Below, one piece after another: positions 3,042 through 55,349 of a DNA stretch of 64,000 bases. The position numbers were made by a program, and so were the translations under genes. Source of the stretch: Rhodosorus marinus CCMP1338 (Eukaryota > Plantae > Rhodophyta); NCBI GenBank assembly GCA_029953675.1, contig JAMWBK010000003.1:2108001-2172000 (forward strand), read 5' to 3'. Each line of letters opens with the position of its first letter. Position 1 is the stretch's first letter. The notes beneath the pieces were generated by a model. It searched no databases. It was not told where the DNA came from and saw only the letters and a list, made by a program, of their open reading frames with translations.

Positions 3042-4983
3042 ATGAGACGTGTCCCGCATTGGTTCATTCCAGCCGGGATCTTGAGCGCAATACGACCAGA
3101 AGAATCCTCCCATCACCTCCAAGGACTCTTCCACTTTAGTTCCTCGGTACGACTCCATCCCAGGAAAGGAGTGAGACGGAGCAGGACTAGCATAAGAGTT
3201 CCAATAGTGCACGCGTCACACTGCCGAGACGATCCATCGTGAATCGAATACTTCATTCTTCAGAATGAGCTAGAAACTTCAGTGCTTATCGCTCCGGTGA
3301 AGCTCCTGTCTCCGTGTGAAACGTCGAGAATACAATATGGTCTTAAGAATCCTCAACTACGCTATCTTGATCATCGCGAACTCCCTTACCCGAAACCCGC
3401 ACGTCGACTTTAGATCCCACAAAGCGCGTGAGATCAGAAGCTATGAGCTGAGGGCCATCGGTTCGGACTTGATAGGGAGGAGAGTTGAACGTACTTGAGG
3501 ACAAGCTCTTCATCATGTTACGACGGATGATCCCTTTTGGTGGTCGATGGTATGGGACACTCATTGAAGGAAAGCCTGCTGTTGCTAACAAAATTTACCC
3601 GGAATTGGCACCACCCTCGCTCGGTACGTTGAGGACTATCGGTTGTTTGCCTTTTACGGATGATTGAATTTTTCTTCCCACGGTACCCCATGCATCTGGT
3701 TTTAATGTTTGCTTTCTGACGTCTACCGCCCGGACTTTTTCGTGATCTTAGGCGGTCTACCTGGAAAGAAGCTCGATCGCCTTCTGGCGAGGTGCGGGGT
3801 GGACGTGATATGGCCCCTCTTCGAGGAAAAAATTTCGTCCGAGGACATCACAGCCAAACACTGCTTAAAAATGCTACGCGTTAGCCGACCACACATGGCA
3901 GAGAAGCTGATCAAAGAGCTCGAAGCCCGTGGGGCCTGCGACCTCTACGCCTACAACCTCTTCCTCAGGCAACTCTCCAAAGGGGACGCGCCAGTTGGCC
4001 CGGGAGAGACCGAAACACCCGCGGACGCCGGCAATCTGAAACTGCTCCTAACGTACGCTAGTGAAATGAAGCAGAAAGGTCTGTCTCCCGATAGTATAAC
4101 CTACGGCATCCTCATTGATCACCTTCATCGCATCGGACGTAAGAAACAAGCCAAAGTAAGCAAAGCCCTGCGAACATACGCGACAAAATACCGGACAGCC
4201 TGTCCAAAACTGCAGGAAATTGTTTTGTCCTCTATGAAGAGAGACAAGCTGTCCTGAAATTTTCGGAGGGACAAGAACTTTGTATCTGACTGAAATTGAA
4301 CCGACTTGGATTTGGTCTTTGCGGCGCAGATGGTGGTCAGGAAGATGTTCAAGAGGACGGAGTGCATTCATGCAGAGACGTATTTAATGCTTGCCAGGAG
4401 ATCGTTTGAGAGTGGACGGGATGGTCGTATGGAGAAGCTGATTGCTGCCATGCTGGCGGTGGGAGTTGGGGAGAAGCGGTTGGAGGAGGCCTTTGAGTTG
4501 CTAGCGGAGTCTCGGCTTCGACGTGGTCTGACTGCGGAGGCTGCGATGGCGATGAAGAGACTGCGGACGCTGAATGATGGGAAGGTTACGAACCGGATGA
4601 CAGAGATGATGATCAAACACTACCTGGACGCTGGTCAGGTCGGGGAGGCCCTAGGAGTGTATCACAGGGCTCAGATCTGCGGTACCGAGCCGGAGGAGGG
4701 TGTGTATGCCATGCTTCTACCCGTGGTCGAAAAACACGGAAATAAGTTGCTGCATTGGGAGATAGAGTCCTCGTACAGGTGGAACGTGCTAGAAGAAGGT
4801 GTTTTCGAAGAGCAGGAACGCCAAGCGAAGAAGAAGGCGCGTTTGATACGAGATCTTAAGTACACAGGCCCGAAAAGCTTGTACAGACAGATCCGGTACG
4901 TGGAACCGGTAGAGGCCGACGATGACTTTGAGGACACCCTTGAAAATGATGCCTCGGAACCCGCGGGTTCCATTGAGGCGTGA
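3042..4983 (+). CDS. Pentatricopeptide-repeat (PPR) protein, multi-exon; start and 5' exons uncertain
   Basis: PPR-like helices DLYAYNLFLRQL, EMKQKGLSPDSITYGILIDHL and MIKHYLDAGQVGEALGVYHRAQICGTEPEEGVYAMLL in ORFs 3709-4257 and 4306-4983. A donor GTAAGC follows KQAK. Confidence 0.75.
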
Positions 4984-6691
4984 TTCGTGGACACACACAA
5001 CACCGCAAGAGCAAGGAAAACTTGTAGAACTCAACGTCCTAAGCTCCTGCTACTTGTATATAAATGGACCTCCAAAAACACCAAGCAACCTTTCGTTCCA
5101 TATCCACCCAGCAAAGAATCCAACTTGCAGGGGTTGATGCTACCAGAGAATGCGAGAAGCTCTTAATCTATCTGCCAATGTGCTCGTAATCCTGTGACAT
5201 CCTCCTGATCCGGGTAAACGACCTCGCCATGGACCAACCATGCCCACTCCTCAACCGCCCTCACACACGCAACGCAAACGACATTCAAGCAAACGCCACA
5301 TCATCCATGCGCAATCAATTCTTAACATTACCCGAAGCCGTGCTCCACCGCCACAGATCCAGAACGCCTCTCCACCTCCCCCCTTCTCAGTCACCGCCCC
5401 CACCACGCATATCCTCGTCGGAAATCAACCATCCATTTTGCAAAGCATCCAAGCCCATGGCCACAACGGATATCGAAAGAAAAAAAAATCCCCGTCCCTC
5501 GAATTCCGCCCTCTTTCCACTACACGAACAAAGAAGCAATTAAAATTCCAAAACACATTCCCAACTACACCCGCGACGGTGGACCGCCGCCCTTCTGAAA
5601 ACTCTTTCCCCACCGCGAAAAAATAGGCTCCTGTTTTTTTACTTAACGCTATTCAGCGGCTTTTCCATCCCCACACTGCTGCTTCCAAAAAAAAAGAAAC
5701 ACCCCTGCGGAATGTCTTCTACCTCACCAAACGTACCCTACACTATTTAAACAATAACCATATTATTTATACTATATAGTTCCTGAATTAGTTTTAAAAA
5801 TTGATTATCTTTATTCAAAAACGATCTAAATATTGCTTGTAAGCAGGAGGAAAAGGCTTAGGTTCTTTTCTGCGTGTTCTCGCCCGACGTCCTAAAAAAA
5901 AATAACAAAAATGTAAATTACAGCCTGTGTAGTGTTTTTGTTGACTGAATATCAATCAAATAAATTAGGGCGATGGAAATTTTTTTTTGTTTTTGGCTCT
6001 TTTTTTGAGGGGGCCAACGAATTTTTTCTTTTTCGGATTACTATGAGAAGAAAAAGCGAGGACCAGGTGATTTTTTTCAAATTTCCGTTGAAAAATAGAA
6101 TAAACGTTCCATTATTTCTGTCTGCAGTAATTATCTAGGCGACGATTGGGTTTAATAGTTATTGTAAATATTTAGTTTTTGAAGTAATATGGTTAATTTG
6201 CATTTTGAAGAATCTCTTGGAGATGTTTTGATTGGTATATTGATCTGATATCATGGCCAATTACGTAACGGAATATCAAGCAGTAAAATTGATTTTAACC
6301 AATGGAAGTAATGTATAGGAAGGATTTGTATGGGAATATCGATATTTCTTTTGTTTTATTATTCTTTGATCGACAATCCTGTGCTGGGGGATTTGTATTC
6401 TCTTATTACCATCGAAGAGCAACCTCTTCTGGATTTGGTTTTTTGCAGGGTTTAATTCTTCGATTAATTAAGCGTTGGAGGGTTGGAGGTTTGGGGGGGG
6501 GGGGGATGGGCTTATCGATGGTTATTAAAGCGGCGGAATAGAATTTCCTCTGTGTGTGGGAAGGGTTGGAGTAGTGGGGAGCGAAAGGAGGGTTGTAAAG
6601 GTTTTTATTGTTATTTTTTTTATTGAGGTGGGAGATCTTGTTGGTTTGGGAGTGAATTTTTTTGAGGAAGGTGTTGCTTAGTGTTGGGAAG

Positions 6692-43316: not shown

Positions 43317-43902
43317 GCTTTTTCCGCTCTTGTTCACTGAACGGCGTGGTCTATTGCAGTCCATAGCTTACGTCCGCCGCTCCCCGCAGAGTTCAACTTT
43401 TACAGCAAGCGCATCATTGCAGTGTGGTAGATCTTCCAGAGAATTTCATGGAATCCCAGCTCCTCTAGAATCTAGAGCCCCGGCAACAAGCTCTATACGG
43501 TAGCAGACCTCAAGCAGTCACTAATCAAGGCTCTCCTCATAAACCTTTGCTGTGCACTACCGGGACATCGATAGAGTGGGTCAACGACGCCAGGGGAAAC
43601 CCAGAAATGTGGTCTGGAGAAATGTGGTCTGGAGCTAGATACGACCAAGCGAAGAGGGCAGCTGCCAGCGGAGGCGTTTTCTGTCCCGATGCAAGACGCC
43701 TAGTCGAAAATTTTCTGTATTTCTCTTGGGCCATGTGGTTGTAACATCGGCCTGTTTCAGACCGACATGTGCTGTCAGGATTTGGTCGGGCACGGAACGG
43801 TCGCATTTTCGGGTACGACGGAGAACGCTTCTGACACTAAATGGTGGTTTTTACTAGGACATGAGTTGGTACCATCGGCCAGTCCTACTCGTAGGCCGTA
43901 CT

Positions 43903-44766
43903 TCAGAGCTTTCCTCGGAAGAGATCATATCCTATTTGGTGCCAAAGGGGTTGGAGTAAGTTCTTCACGTAGGTCTTCATCGCCTCTGTTGATGTTGCTG
44001 AAGCCCGAATGAGAGTGATTGGATGGTCGACGGGAAAATTTGTAGAGATGGTTGAAAGCGAGGCCACGACATCTCGAGTCTTCGTGCTGGGCCGAATGGA
44101 ATCGAGCTGGATCTTCTCCTGTGCGTGCTGAATGCACTTCTCGGTTTTGGGGCCGACAAGGAGGAGCGTGAAGATCACGTCGAAACGTCCCATGCGACTT
44201 TGTAAACTCCCGGAGCTGTTTTCCAGCACCATCCTGTCGTGAAGCAGCTGAGTTCCGCCCAGCTTGAGATTAATCTCCGATTCAAACAAGTCGAACTGCC
44301 ATCGCTCGCCCATAGCACTTCTCCCAGACGTGAACCAATCCACAAAGACCAGAGAGCCACCAATGGAGACGTTGAGGTCGAAAAGCTGGGAATAGACCGC
44401 CTTCGCGAAACAGACTGTGGGATCTGGAAAAATTACCGCAAATCCGCCATCCTCGATCGAAAGACAAAGCGTCTGACAAGTTTTGGCGTCCAAATCTTCA
44501 GGCTTCCGGTAGACTTTCGTTGAGCTCTGGGTTGTAAGGGCGAGGCCGGAACCGGTCTTCACGACAACATCCATGAGAATGACGTCTCCAGCCACCAAAC
44601 CACCGCCGTATGTAACAAGATAAGCCAAGAGATAGCCTTCTCGGCTGGTCAAAGTAATCCATTTAGACGGATATCCGGCGACAGCGGTTATAGCGGTACT
44701 CTTCCCTCGTGCCAAGTGAACGACGAGACGATCACGATGTGAAGAGCTTAGAGTAGAGCCTATCAT
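43903..44766 (-). CDS. ureD: Urease accessory protein UreD
   Basis: YPSKW, YLVTYGGGLVAGD, LTTQSSTKVYRK, FPDPTVCFAKAVYSQ, VDWFTSGRSAMGERWQF, LLHDRMVL and TLLLVGP. Confidence 0.95.
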   Translation of the reverse strand: MIGSTLSSSHRDRLVVHLARGKSTAITAVAGYPSKWITLTSREGYLLAYLVTYGGGLVAGDVILMDVVVKTGSGLALTTQSSTKVYRKPEDLDAKTCQTLCLSIEDGGFAVIFPDPTVCFAKAVYSQLFDLNVSIGGSLVFVDWFTSGRSAMGERWQFDLFESEINLKLGGTQLLHDRMVLENSSGSLQSRMGRFDVIFTLLLVGPKTEKCIQHAQEKIQLDSIRPSTKTRDVVASLSTISTNFPVDHPITLIRASATSTEAMKTYVKNLLQPLWHQIGYDLFRGKL

Positions 44767-45448
44767 GGCAGCTTTGGAATATTTCCACTAGTGGTGAGCT
44801 AACATAGGCGTCGTCCACTGAAAGACCGGCAAACTCAGAGAGAAGACACTCTGCTTTCCCGTACAGAGAGCTTTGAACTCTCTGTGCCTCAAAGGTTCCG
44901 ACTATTCCGAGCCTCACTGCGGCGGAGATGACACCCCGTAGGGTGATGAAGAGGAAGAGCCGTTGGGTTTCTCCAAAATTGACCCCAAGCGCCCCACAGG
45001 CATACCCAAAAACAACGGGAAAGTGTCCACAAAGTCTCTTCTCCTTCACTAGTCGCCTCAGCGTGCTGCTGACCTCGGCGGTCTCTGGCAACGTCCTAAC
45101 AGCCGCGAGGAAGGCCAATCCTTGTGCGATTGACGCCCTTCTTCCCACCGCGTTCCCGGCAACCAGTAGATCTAATCGCCGGTCCAACTCGATAGCCCCA
45201 GGACAAACCTCCAGTTGTACCTCCCGGCTACCCGTCCCAAAGTCACTATACGCGGTGCTTACGAAAGGCAAGCCGGAAGTAGCAACATTTCGAACAATTT
45301 CGAGCGTGTACTCGCCGAGATCCTCGATCTCACCAAGCTGTTGTGCTGCTTCAAGTCCAACAGAATGCGAAAAGCCTCCAACCGGGAATGCAGAATCAGC
45401 CAACTGCCATAACAACCATTTGCTACTGTCACTTCGTCCTTCAATCAT
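44732..45448 (-). CDS. ureF: Urease accessory protein UreF
   Basis: WLLWQLADSAFPVGGFSHSVGLEAA, RRASIAQGLAFL, GHFPVVFG, LRGVISAAVRLGIVG and the C-terminal CHDRLYSKLFTS*. First ATG is at 45448. Confidence 0.95.
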   Translation of the reverse strand: MIEGRSDSSKWLLWQLADSAFPVGGFSHSVGLEAAQQLGEIEDLGEYTLEIVRNVATSGLPFVSTAYSDFGTGSREVQLEVCPGAIELDRRLDLLVAGNAVGRRASIAQGLAFLAAVRTLPETAEVSSTLRRLVKEKRLCGHFPVVFGYACGALGVNFGETQRLFLFITLRGVISAAVRLGIVGTFEAQRVQSSLYGKAECLLSEFAGLSVDDAYVSSPLVEIFQSCHDRLYSKLFTS

Positions 45449-46084
45449 CACCTTGAGGACCGATCTAATCCCTTTCGGAGCTCGGATTCCTCACCTCACA
45501 CTATTCAGGAGACTAGATCCGCTTTCCCAGCGTCCCAATACTCGATGTAGTTGGCGGTCCAATCGGATTGTTGTCCATGACTCAATGGACTTTTCTGGTC
45601 TGCCTTTTCACGACCGGTACCCTGTTTTGTCCTCTAAAAAGTTGCGAGGTGATGATGAAGGCCATTATGGGTAGCACTCGAGTACTCGGTTGCAATGTGG
45701 ATTGCCCAGATCAACCCGCCAACCCAGTCCAGGGCGAAAAATTTCATAAGGGAGCTTGTAGTTGCGCGTAAGCGGTTTTCGTCAGTGCGGACCATCGCCC
45801 AGCGACACTGCGATATAAGCTAGAGATCTGCATACGTCTTTGGTGGAAATCCGATAGTGGTATCAAATCAAGTTATTCTCATTTACATTTCCAGGGTCAC
45901 TCATCTGCTTCTCCCAAGTCAGACTTGGAAAATCAAGTCCGACATCAATCTTGGAACAAAGAAAAGCCGAACAACTGGAAAAAGACAAAAAGGAGTAAAA
46001 ATATATAGATACTTGAAAGTCTGTATAGATATCAGTGCACCGAGTGGTGTTTCAGTTTCAGTCCCAGTCCACATGGCTAGGACC

Positions 46085-48889
46085 TCAGGATACTCTCGCT
46101 AAGAACCCACGAACCTGTAGCATAGAAACATTACAAACGGAGACATTAGAGAGTGTCTTCTGAACAAACGCGATTTGCTAGCGACAACGTACTTGACCCA
46201 AGGCTTCCGCCTTTCCAGGAGTGGAATCCAGTTTTTCCTCCTGCCAAGCCTTCAGTGTCTGGGTGTTAACAACGTTCACGGCGTGAAGGACCTTGAACAA
46301 ACTCGTCAACAGCCCGGCCGGGTATTCCACCATGTGCCAGACTCTCTGGCTTTCGAAAAGGCACTTCAGCTGCAGCTCGACTGAATCTCCGACTGCAAAC
46401 CGGAACGCCGGAGCGGTTTTCTCTATGTACGTCTGAACCGTTGTCCAGGATTCATCGTCGTCTGTTCCTCGGTGAATGCTCGCATTTAGCAGGACGTTGA
46501 TCACAAGCTCCGCAAAGGCCACCTACAATCCACACAGAGCAATACGTGCCGATAACGTTGCACACTTGAGCTAAACCATCAACTACAATGAAATCAAGCC
46601 AGAGCGATGAAAGTTCGGAGCTAAGGCATACCTTCGGAGCCTCGTCACTAGGATCAAGAGGCATATGCTGTCGCACCCATGCTATAAGCTTGGTAGGATC
46701 ATTCATTGCATTAGCGGCCAGCTCCTGGAGTTCCATTTTTCGGCCGCCATCGGGAAGCAGAAACATCAGCTTCTCGGAGCGGAAAAGCCCCACTATCTCA
46801 GCTGCCGGCATCACACCGACAAGGCATTGTGGGAAGTCCACCCCCGAGGTGTTGCACATTTTAGCAAAGGATTCCTCGTCTTGGAGGAGGACCTTGTACG
46901 TAGACAGGCCGGTTATCAGTACCGGCGCTCGCCTTGAAGCGTGCACTTCCATGACGAGGTGGGCAACAGAGCTCAGCCCGATCGCTCCTGCGAAGCATAT
47001 GCACGCCATGAAATCCCCTAAAGACTGTGCAAGAAGCGGTTGGTCCAGGTCACTCTCTACCCTGTGCACGTCCGAACATAAAGCCATCATTCCCGACTCG
47101 ACCTGACTTGTTGTAAGCTTGCCAGACTCAAGCAGGAGCGAAATTGCCACCGCTACGCTCTCTCGATCTGACACTTTTCTCTGTATGGCAATAGAGGCTG
47201 CCCTGTAGACCACAAGATTCTTGTTTTCGTTCTCCAACGGGGACAAAACCTCCTGCTGCTCTTTGCTAGCAAGCCAATCCATCCAAATTCCATCGATTCT
47301 CACCACGGCGAGAGCTCTAGCGTCATCTGCTGACGGCTGTCTGTGCTGGGCTGGCACTAGGGTGTAGGACGGTCCTCTGGCCGAGTGATAATCGTTGTGA
47401 TTATGGGAACTGTGAGATCCGTGCGAAGTATGCCCATAACCCCTCTCCCGCTTATACGGGACGCTGGCATGGTGCGAGCCTTGCGCGAGAATCAAAGTCG
47501 GAGGCCCGTTCGCTTGACGAGTGTAGGTCGTGGGAGCCGTCCTTGATTCTTCCTCTGCATGAAGGTCTTCCAACCTTCTCGGGCCAGGATCTTGTCTTCG
47601 AGGCTTCCATGCGTTCTCCCTGAGCTCCAATAGGTCTATTAGTACAAATCGAATTCGGGAGCTAACCTAGTGCATCAAGATCACAGGATATTTCAAGTTC
47701 TTAGACACAGAATTCTTACTGCAAACTATTAGCACTACCGTTTAAGACGCCTACCTCCGAATCAACTGAAAATTCTTTGATTTTCTGAAAATATACATCC
47801 ATCCAGCTCCTCGCTTCCGGCCGATCCAACGACTTTCCCACCACGCTGAGCAGCTTTGCGAGACTCTCCATTGCTTCCTCGTCCATTTGTTTTGTGGCAT
47901 CCGTTAGCAAAAGTTGAACGTTTTGGTGCATAACTTTTTCGCTGATAAGAGACTTTTTGAACAGCTCTCCGACAAAAATGGCGTTCCCCAGAACCCGTCT
48001 CCGCTCTTGTGAGCGCAGGGCTTGCGCCTCTTCGGGCGTCGCGCCTTCGATTTTCGTTTTCTGTACGAATTTCTCTCGACATCTCGCTAGCAGAAGCTTT
48101 CTAAACGTAAGCTCTTCCCCTTTTGGACCCTTCAGCGGCTTCAGCTGTGTGTTAAGCTTGGCGCACAGTTCCGTGTAAAGGCCAGCAAATTGTGGTTCAG
48201 AGAGTGCCTTATCGAAAATGAGTTCAATCACTATCTCGAGGTTCTCTTTGTTCGAGTCGACTCCGCTGCTCACAAGCTGCTCGGATAGTGTGTCAAACCG
48301 TGAATACGTCAACTTATTAAGGATCCCTTGCACTTTCCTAACCGCTGATTCGACAGCCGATACTTCATTAGCCCGCCAAGGCTGATCCGGGCGTTTGGCG
48401 TTCGGGGCCATAGCCTGGCTCTGACTAAGGGTTGGGAAGACTGGTGTGGATCCATGCTGGGTTGTACCCTGGACGGAGGCAGAGAATTCTTAGTCAGTAG
48501 ATTGCAGGCACGCATTGAGTTATCCGTTCTTAGCGTACCTTTCTCTGTGCATTGGCCCTGATATTTAACGAATTTGACTGTAAACCAGGCGATTGGAAAT
48601 TCGCGTTCTGGTTGGTAGTGGACAACGTAACTGTGGGATTCTGAAAGGCTGCTAGGGCGGCTGTAAGCGCCTGTGACTCAAGAGGCGTCAACGGACGATT
48701 TACTATCGACTCAAAAGCAGTGAAGGCACGCTCCCTCGCTCCAAGACCAGTCCTTCTCGACGAACCATATGTGTTACCAATATTCGGACGCCTCCCGCTC
48801 ACCGTAGAATGCCCCTGAGCCCCGCTAATACCGCCATGTCGTCGATAACCCCCGTCTCCCTCCCCCCAATCTTCCATACGCCTCGCCAA
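46085..48889 (-). CDS. eIF4G-family translation factor with MIF4G, MA3 and W2 domains; multi-exon
   Basis: MIF4G: VQGILNKLT, LIFDKALSEPQFAGLYTELC, FRKLLLARC, RRVLGNAIFVGELFK. Linker NAWKPRRQDPGPRRLEDLH. W2-like: LFKVLHAVNVVNTQTLKAWQE..PGKAEALGQVRGFL. Confidence 0.9.
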
Positions 48890-55232: not shown

Positions 55233-55349
55233 AGAGACTTGTCGATTCGAGGCCAGCGAAGTGGCTTTACACAAAAGAGACTTGTCGGTGTCGCTTCGAG
55301 GCCAAGCAAGTAGCTCTTACACAAAAGAGACTTGTCGATTCGAGGCCAA
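55233..55349. repeat. Short tandem repeat, about 3 copies of 43-50 nt
   Basis: AGAGACTTGTCG(ATT)CGAGGCCA at 55233, 55276 and 55326; the TACACAAAAGAGACTTGTCG linker is repeated. Confidence 0.85.

Follow-up and report, generated by a model that had tools for sequence, protein, structure and literature searches.

An apparently ancient overlapping ureF-ureD gene pair in the nuclear genome of the red alga Rhodosorus marinus and the candidate routes to its second protein

Introduction

How is the second protein made when two nuclear genes of a eukaryote are read from the same strand and overlap by 35 nucleotides (nt) in different frames? The question is raised by ureF and ureD, two urease-maturation genes of the red alga Rhodosorus marinus CCMP1338. 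Both lie in a stretch of 64,000 nt from contig JAMWBK010000003.1 of assembly GCA_029953675.1 (positions 2,108,001 to 2,172,000, forward strand), referred to here as the window, and all coordinates below are positions within it unless a contig is named. UreF and UreD together form a scaffold that recruits UreG to urease. In Helicobacter pylori and Klebsiella, UreD (called UreH in the former) is poorly soluble without UreF, and the C-terminal tail of UreF is ordered in the complex. A sequence-only reading of the window had described the two genes as an operon-like pair and had offered three routes to UreD, namely a bicistronic mRNA with termination-coupled re-initiation, a promoter inside ureF, or a +1 frameshift that would yield a fusion protein. 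Here we ask how widely the arrangement is conserved, what its overlap can and cannot tell us, and which route to UreD is best supported.

Results

Both genes are uninterrupted, intronless open reading frames (ORFs) on the minus strand, which can be read directly off the sequence. ureF (44732..45448) encodes 238 amino acids, starting at ATG 45448 and ending at TGA 44734-44732; an automatic ORF list begins it one codon upstream, at a GTG. ureD (43903..44766) encodes 287 amino acids between ATG 44766 and TGA 43905-43903. Their dual-coding overlap of 35 nt (44732..44766, minus strand) holds the last 11 sense codons and the stop codon of ureF together with the first 12 codons of ureD, which are read in the +1 frame. 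The UreD start ATG (44764..44766, minus strand) is composed of the AT of a UreF His codon, CAT, and the G of the following Asp codon, GAT, in the context gctgccATGa. It is the sole ATG ahead of the conserved UreD core, and it is found in all five related sequences described below. Upstream, the UreD frame is closed by a TAG at the eighth codon before the ATG, with 7 sense codons between, and the next in-frame Met after the start is residue 65, beyond the YGGG motif. Everything that the sequence-only reading had stated about the sequence itself was borne out.

UreF matched the Pfam family UreF (PF01730) in a profile search (E 1.3e-22, 81.2 bits against a cut-off of 23.3) and aligned along its whole length with H. 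pylori UreF (2wgl/3sf5), including the C-terminal HxxLYSRL tail. It is 87 % identical to the R. marinus UreF A0A7S3A2Y7. The protein ends in CHDRLYSKLFTS, directly followed by TGA, and carries the conserved tail motif H-x-R-L-Y-S-R/K-L-F, in agreement with the canonical terminus claimed earlier. The downstream ORF matched the Pfam family UreD (PF01774; E 2.8e-48, 165 bits against a cut-off of 27). Its AlphaFold model, made with a 13-sequence alignment, had a predicted local distance difference test score (pLDDT) of 87.9 and a predicted template modeling score (pTM) of 0.88, and Foldseek matched it to H. pylori UreH in 8hc1_C (E 4e-18, TM 0.76/0.83). Matches to 8hc1_C, 4hi0_B, 3sf5_B and 8hcn_D, which are H. 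pylori UreH and Klebsiella UreD in complexes, ranged from E 4e-18 to 7e-15 with TM values of 0.71-0.83. We identify the downstream ORF as UreD/UreH, with a predicted β-helix-like UreD fold. The model shows disorder at residues 1-8 and a first strand over residues 11-19, while L14 is invariant in the alignment with bacterial UreD. By both alignment and model, the conserved core and its first β-strand begin at the ureF stop, where UreD homology had been placed from the sequence alone.

The UreD protein search covered 5.8 billion sequences and gave five close UreD clusters; matches totaled 140 for UreD and 2408 for UreF, with the best 120 of each listed. The related sequences comprise an R. marinus MMETSP transcript of 1712 nt (L001; ureF 77-793, ureD 759-1622), an MMETSP transcript of 1717 nt (L002; ureF 91-777, ureD 743-1612), two genomic Logan assemblies, SRR22824282 and SRR22824290 (L003 and L004; ureF 4473-5165 and ureD 5131-6003 in L003), and a contig of R. 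marinus MMETSP0315 (L005; ureD 59-922), from which ureF is absent, the contig beginning inside that gene. What had been described at one locus recurs in related algae: the exact 35-nt overlap, with its ATG set in TG[CT]-CAT-GA[TAC], is present in three Rhodosorus strains and two relatives. The three lineages that these sequences represent are roughly equidistant (41-44 % identity in UreD, 54-60 % in UreF), and ureF and ureD are colinear with identical geometry across the three deep lineages and the three Rhodosorus strains. An assembly indel at the overlap, a possibility raised by the sequence-only reading itself, is ruled out, as the frames are the same in the long-read genome, in three transcriptomes and in two Logan assemblies. 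By sequence comparison, the ureF-ureD tandem appears to be an ancient, conserved overlapping pair.

Two further observations concern these sequences. L005 and a second contig, L151 (MMETSP0315, sample 3300016967), share their length and ends and differ at 31 of 1102 positions, which suggests two alleles or two strains in the MMETSP0315 culture. Within ureF, a perfect 9-bp hairpin, CAGAGAGUU-CAA-AGCUCUCUG, lies at 44864-44884 (minus strand), about 100 nt upstream of the UreD AUG; it is retained in L003 with one compensatory pair and is broken in L002.

Transcripts L001 and L002, from two lineages, contain both ORFs in unspliced form. Their leaders before the UreF ATG are 76 nt (L001) and 90 nt (L002) long and free of ATG, as are the window's 80 nt upstream of the UreF start. 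The trailers after the UreD stop are 90 nt (L001) and 105 nt (L002), and both end in ...TTCAAA(A), probably at poly(A) sites. By analogy with L001, the window probably holds an ATG-free 5' untranslated region (UTR) of ~76 nt at 45449..45524 and a 3'UTR of ~90 nt at 43813..43902, both on the minus strand, the latter with a conserved ...GGCCGAT.GTACCA...TAAAAAC stretch. In these assembled transcripts both ORFs appear to lie on one dicistronic transcript of ~1.7 kb in two independent lineages, and the spanning contigs would correspond to single mRNA molecules. The bicistronic mRNA of the sequence-only reading stands to this extent, one contig spanning both ORFs in two lineages; leaky scanning was missing from its three routes.

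How much does the overlap itself reveal? In the +1 frame of the tail H-D/E-R-L-Y-S-K/R-L-F-x-S a stop codon is impossible with any choice of codons, and an ATG arises in the UreF tail whenever the His is encoded by CAT. Because the UreF tail dictates a stop-free +1 frame, the openness of the overlap and its 35-nt length are by-products of the conserved UreF C-terminus and carry no evidential weight; the overlap had been overrated as evidence in itself. A metagenome scan for further eukaryotic junctions returned only bacterial-looking environmental contigs, from a collection evidently without MMETSP contigs. In 58 such environmental, apparently bacterial contigs (L013-L070) the UreF tail has the same CATGA, and ureD lies downstream in none of the 58. 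In about 10 of these 58 the ureG ORF is open back to the UreF-tail ATG, an apparent ureF/ureG overlap of 35 nt that the same stop-free frame probably produces as a side effect. What is informative is that ureD directly follows ureF in three deep lineages, that no other AUG precedes the UreD core and that CAT is retained: the UreF His codon is CAT, not CAC, in all three lineages, with His usage at about 50:50 (p ~0.07). Most strain-to-strain changes within the overlap are synonymous for UreF but replace a residue of UreD, so the overlap sequence seems to be dictated by UreF, with the UreD leader as a likely passenger.

The route to UreD that we favor, tentatively and as a possibility, is a dicistronic mRNA on which UreD is reached by leaky scanning. 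We propose a model where one capped, polyadenylated mRNA of ~1.7 kb would carry a 5'UTR of ~76-90 nt, ureF, the overlapping ureD, and a 3'UTR of ~90-105 nt. UreF would be made by ordinary cap-dependent initiation at AUG 45448. UreD would be a separate protein that begins at AUG 44766, within the UreF His-Asp codons, and 40S subunits would reach this codon by scanning past the UreF AUG, possibly hopping via a few very short out-of-frame ORFs. The outcome would be more UreF than UreD from the same mRNA molecule, and such an excess would suit a UreD that needs UreF for solubility. We infer the translation of UreD from the spanning mRNA, the leaky-scanning route and the benefit for assembly.

The density of ATG triplets bears on this proposal. 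Observed/expected ratios were 0.45, 0.54, 0.36 and 0.11 in the ureF sequences versus 0.87, 0.86, 0.59 and 1.14 in ureD, with a range of 0.54-1.56 in 13 other ORFs of the window. Pooled counts were 9 ATGs in 1983 nt of ureF versus 32 in 2598 nt of ureD (p = 0.004), and the ureF of L003 has a single ATG in 655 nt. At the protein level, internal Met is absent from UreF in every algal lineage, for which we estimate a rough joint probability of ~0.015; among the matches listed, 106 of 118 other UreF homologues have at least one internal Met. In algal UreF a Cys precedes the conserved His, at a position occupied by Met in several of the closest UreF homologues inspected. As a clean signature of leaky scanning, ATG depletion was upheld only in part, the composition tests being significant and the synonymous-resampling null erasing the codon-level signal.

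Several findings weigh against leaky scanning on a dicistron. Out-of-frame ATGs occur in ureF at the level expected from synonymous resampling (5 vs 5.15, 3 vs 3.34 and 1 vs 2.18), and because this resampling shows no avoidance of ATG at the codon level, the low ATG density of ureF reflects a Met-free protein; 10 % of the other listed UreF homologues are likewise Met-free. In Rhodosorus a scanning subunit would meet five out-of-frame AUGs on its way from the UreF start to that of UreD, and the context of one is strong (gttgttATGg); in green algae a single added AUG abolished expression of the second ORF (PMC11291117). The five open ORFs of only 4-29 codons, and hops by re-initiation after such short ORFs are conceivable, although the route would still be inefficient. 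The UreF AUG, found in the contexts aaggtgATGa, tccgcgATGt and ctgtgaATGg, is not clearly weak: two of the lineages carry a G at -3. Further, at 717 nt the first ORF is longer than a typical algal first ORF (median 291-357 nt). The transcripts add two points of their own: L001 and L002 are short-read assemblies, in which two overlapping transcripts would merge into the same contig, and L005 starts 58 nt ahead of the UreD AUG, with no MMETSP0315 UreF in the best 120 of 2408 matches.

The last two points lead to a different explanation, in which transcription starts within the 3' part of ureF. UreD would then be translated conventionally from AUG 44766 of a monocistronic ureD mRNA, and the long ureF transcript would read through ureD or end within it. 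This is the commonest mode of expression for overlapping eukaryotic genes, it would be unaffected by the five AUGs within Rhodosorus ureF, and polycistrons elsewhere come with internal monocistrons (PMC11761812). It could also account for L005 and L151, both of which begin at the same point before the UreD AUG. These two contigs, though, derive from one assembly graph with identical ends, and their 3' end lies 180 nt past the stop, unlike that of L001, so that the ends are probably arbitrary; 3' bias would account for the missing part of ureF. Complete spanning contigs from two other lineages also speak against an internal start, as does the last 150 nt of ureF, which lacks any extra conservation hinting at an embedded promoter. 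The intergenic regions that flank the pair measure 540-730 nt, so the overlap is not forced by genome compaction. With this evidence on either side, an internal transcription start is a simple alternative source of UreD, which we rate slightly below leaky scanning.

The first of the routes proposed from the sequence alone, termination-coupled re-initiation, shares the dicistronic mRNA with leaky scanning and differs in how the second start codon is reached. After translating UreF, the 40S subunit would stay on the message, move ~35 nt backwards from 44732 and restart at AUG 44766. Spanning transcripts exist, as this requires, and the mechanism would be indifferent to AUGs inside ureF while tying UreD synthesis to UreF synthesis. 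In the M2 mRNA of respiratory syncytial virus (RSV), where coupling works without viral proteins, the stop-to-AUG distance reaches at most 32 nt, close to the 35 nt seen here, and some human overlapping ORFs couple too; a distance of 72 nt abolishes RSV coupling, which puts 35 nt at the edge of the known range (PMC3923131). A tethering element is normally needed after a long ORF and none was found: in every lineage the 150 nt around the stop lack UGGGA, the 18S-complementary motif 1 of the calicivirus termination upstream ribosome-binding site (TURBS), and folding of the junction (z = -1.22 versus shuffles) and its covariation (-0.88 kcal/mol) were unremarkable, in a comparison of four sequences with low power. 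More generally, Rfam returned nothing at the junction, and neither RNAalifold nor RNAfold gave a significant structure for the four sequences. There is no excess of synonymous conservation, sliding-window divergence between strains reveals no extra constraint near the junction, and the stop codon with its next base varies by lineage (UGA U, UAA G, UAA A). Backward re-initiation is, in our view, unlikely.

Could ribosomes instead change frame at the ureF stop? In this third route, UCG-UGA-U would be read as UCG-(U)-GAU in the manner of antizyme, giving a fusion in which ...KLFTS is joined to DRLVVHL... The Rhodosorus UCG UGA U is similar to the shift site of antizyme, UCC UGA U; ureD lies in precisely the +1 frame, and its homology to other UreD proteins starts at the codon that overlaps the stop. 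That the overlap is open says nothing as to which model is right. The shift site itself is not conserved (UCG UAA G in L002, UCC UAA A in L003), the search for a conserved structure downstream gave none, and an AUG for UreD is present in every lineage. A fusion would bury the UreF C-terminal tail, and no natural UreF-UreD fusion occurs in the best 120 of the 140 UreD and 2408 UreF matches, the sole two-domain entry being the GenBank model of this very locus. The frameshift proposal is left without support, and we consider it very unlikely.

That GenBank model, NDN08_003377, deserves attention in its own right. Its 484 amino acids join UreF to residue 41 of UreD by means of a 91-nt GT..AG intron (44645..44735, minus strand), a segment that is actually coding and specifies UreD residues ~12-41. 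Read as a genuine spliced fusion, the model would have this intron, 44735..44645, remove the ureF stop and link UreF to UreD from residue 41 onward. The segment does have GT..AG ends and a length of 3n+1 that restores the frame, and splicing can fuse bicistronic ORFs, for which MOCS1 is a precedent (PMC9607355). Against this, the two closest strains, L001 and L005, lack the acceptor AG, and L003 lacks the donor GT. The segment is kept in transcripts L001 and L002, aligns with bacterial UreD, and encodes three high-confidence β-strands of the AlphaFold model (residues 11-19, 22-29 and 34-40); between strains it shows 6 synonymous versus 4 non-synonymous codon changes. Because its splice sites are unconserved and it is present in transcripts and codes for UreD strands, the annotated intron is an artefact that bridges the frame change, and a genuine spliced fusion is scarcely credible. 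A hidden 5' exon or intron that would supply another UreD start, a possibility allowed for by the sequence-only reading, is likewise unlikely and was rejected as the source of the main product, since the only annotated intron is unconserved and would excise folded UreD strands. UniRef names the NDN08_003377 product UreD only.

Where might the junction have come from? Among the matches listed, the nearest non-algal relatives of both proteins belong to Acidobacteriota, Planctomycetota, Verrucomicrobiota and Myxococcota, with identities of 44-48 % for UreF and 33-39 % for UreD. In these bacterial relatives ureD heads a ureD-ureAB-ureC series, and one contig (L010) has ureD and ureF ~5 kb apart in a single cluster. 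Downstream of related bacterial ureF genes comes a gene for a cobW/G3E-family GTPase, presumably ureG, or a closely spaced gene that the contig end truncates. In GTDB, the 80 closest bacterial ureD loci all lack a ureF within 2 kb, and no F-to-D adjacency was seen in the sampled bacterial ureF/ureD neighborhoods, which together rule out an inherited bacterial operon junction. Given its absence from bacterial relatives, the F-to-D junction would seem to have arisen on the eukaryotic side or to have come from an unsampled donor. The two genes themselves are both intronless in a genome that averages ~3 introns per gene, and a bacterial origin of both is possible.

The setting of the pair is that of a eukaryotic chromosome. 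The window is nuclear DNA of R. marinus, whose CCMP1338 nuclear assembly spans 31 Mb with 8392 genes and ~3 introns per gene (PMC10250338). The UreD ORF is 100 % identical to NDN08_003377 over 87 % of UreD length, and by NCBI protein match NDN08_003377 sits on a 3.35-Mb contig. Directly upstream of ureF is an eIF4G-like gene with MIF4G, MA3 and W2 parts (46178-47630 and beyond, minus strand), and its ortholog occupies the same position in the relative's genomic contig L003 (868-3662; E 2e-32 and 1e-20). The match to an R. marinus contig and the eukaryotic eIF4G-like neighbor, syntenic in L003, establish that the pair is nuclear and eukaryotic, as the sequence-only reading had supposed, and exclude a contaminant. 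With this gene syntenic in so distant a relative, the whole neighborhood is conserved, beyond the ure pair alone. Elsewhere in the window, a two-copy tandem repeat with a 50-nt unit and a 90 % match lies at 55240-55337, the only one to score >80, and neither tRNA genes nor Rfam matches were found across the 64 kb.

Discussion

The arrangement described here appears to be a new example of something already known in algae, two genes on one mRNA. In the literature we found neither an overlap nor a dicistron of ureF and ureD described for any eukaryote, algae included. If UreF were made first and in excess from the same mRNA, nascent UreD would find itself beside its partner, which provides a rationale for the pairing, and the arrangement may in this way couple the stoichiometry of the two proteins.

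The closest cellular analogue is the MOCS2A/MOCS2B pair of animal molybdopterin synthase, which belongs to another pathway and another lineage and has a short first ORF (~88 codons in MOCS2A), unlike the 238-codon ureF with its several internal out-of-frame AUGs. In both cases the two ORFs share an orientation, overlap in different frames, by 77 nt in one and 35 nt in the other, and encode partner subunits of a single hetero-oligomer. The overlap covers the C-terminal tail of the first protein, which is functionally important, together with the start of the second, and the arrangement is kept across species. MOCS2A and MOCS2B, with their 77-nt overlap, are translated by leaky scanning (PMC9607355).

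Algal polycistrons offer a second comparison. Green-algal bicistrons use leaky scanning, with short 5'UTRs and an ATG depletion of ~0.43-0.49 (PMC11291117), and among red algae the Cyanidiophyceae are reported to have polycistronic transcripts (PMC9812998). As is proposed for the pair in Rhodosorus, the polycistrons of green algae (Chlamydomonas, Auxenochlorella, Chromochloris) and Cyanidiophyceae place two ORFs on one capped, polyadenylated mRNA behind a short, ATG-poor 5'UTR (PMC11291117, PMC9812998), with low ATG density before the second ORF, conserved colinearity and no trans-splicing. They differ in their first ORFs, with a median of ~300-360 nt, and in the spacing of the two ORFs, which lie 40-180 nt apart where ureF and ureD overlap by 35 nt. 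Their partners do not as a rule belong to one complex, and the evidence there is based on long reads, in green algae also on mutations, while here it consists of short-read contigs.

Two more distant systems share single features with the algal pair. In the pneumovirus M2-1/M2-2 mRNA the second AUG likewise precedes the first stop by ~30 nt (RSV 32 nt, the algal pair 35 nt), and the first ORF is again long (PMC3923131), but the system is viral and needs a structured sequence inside that ORF, whereas no conserved structure or motif was detected at the algal junction. If backward re-initiation were nonetheless the route to UreD, it would be a cellular, non-viral case of such coupling, in which synthesis of an aggregation-prone UreD is tied to that of UreF, the partner whose C-terminal tail the overlap encodes, on the same mRNA, and it would have been kept since the divergence of lineages that are 41-44 % identical in UreD. 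The bacterial ure operons (ureDABCEFG, ureABCEFGD) also co-transcribe their accessory genes, often with short overlaps. They differ in gene order, ureF-then-ureD occurring in 0 of 80 nearest relatives, and the algal pair is nuclear, sits beside an eIF4G-like gene and follows no Shine-Dalgarno logic.

There is a practical consequence for databases. The GenBank/UniProt entry is a mis-modeled fusion that lacks UreD residues 1-40, and it will spread a false UreF-UreD architecture.

Were the dicistronic reading to prove true, the pair would represent a compact eukaryotic equivalent of an operon, anciently conserved and serving two binding partners, that arose independently of the ure operons of bacteria. 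Nuclear polycistrony, not previously reported from the Stylonematophyceae, would then also be known from mesophilic red algae of that class. With ~1.7 kb and no introns, the pair would also provide a small natural test case for how an overlapping ORF is reached behind a long first ORF, and it could show whether encoding UreF and UreD in cis promotes their co-translational assembly.

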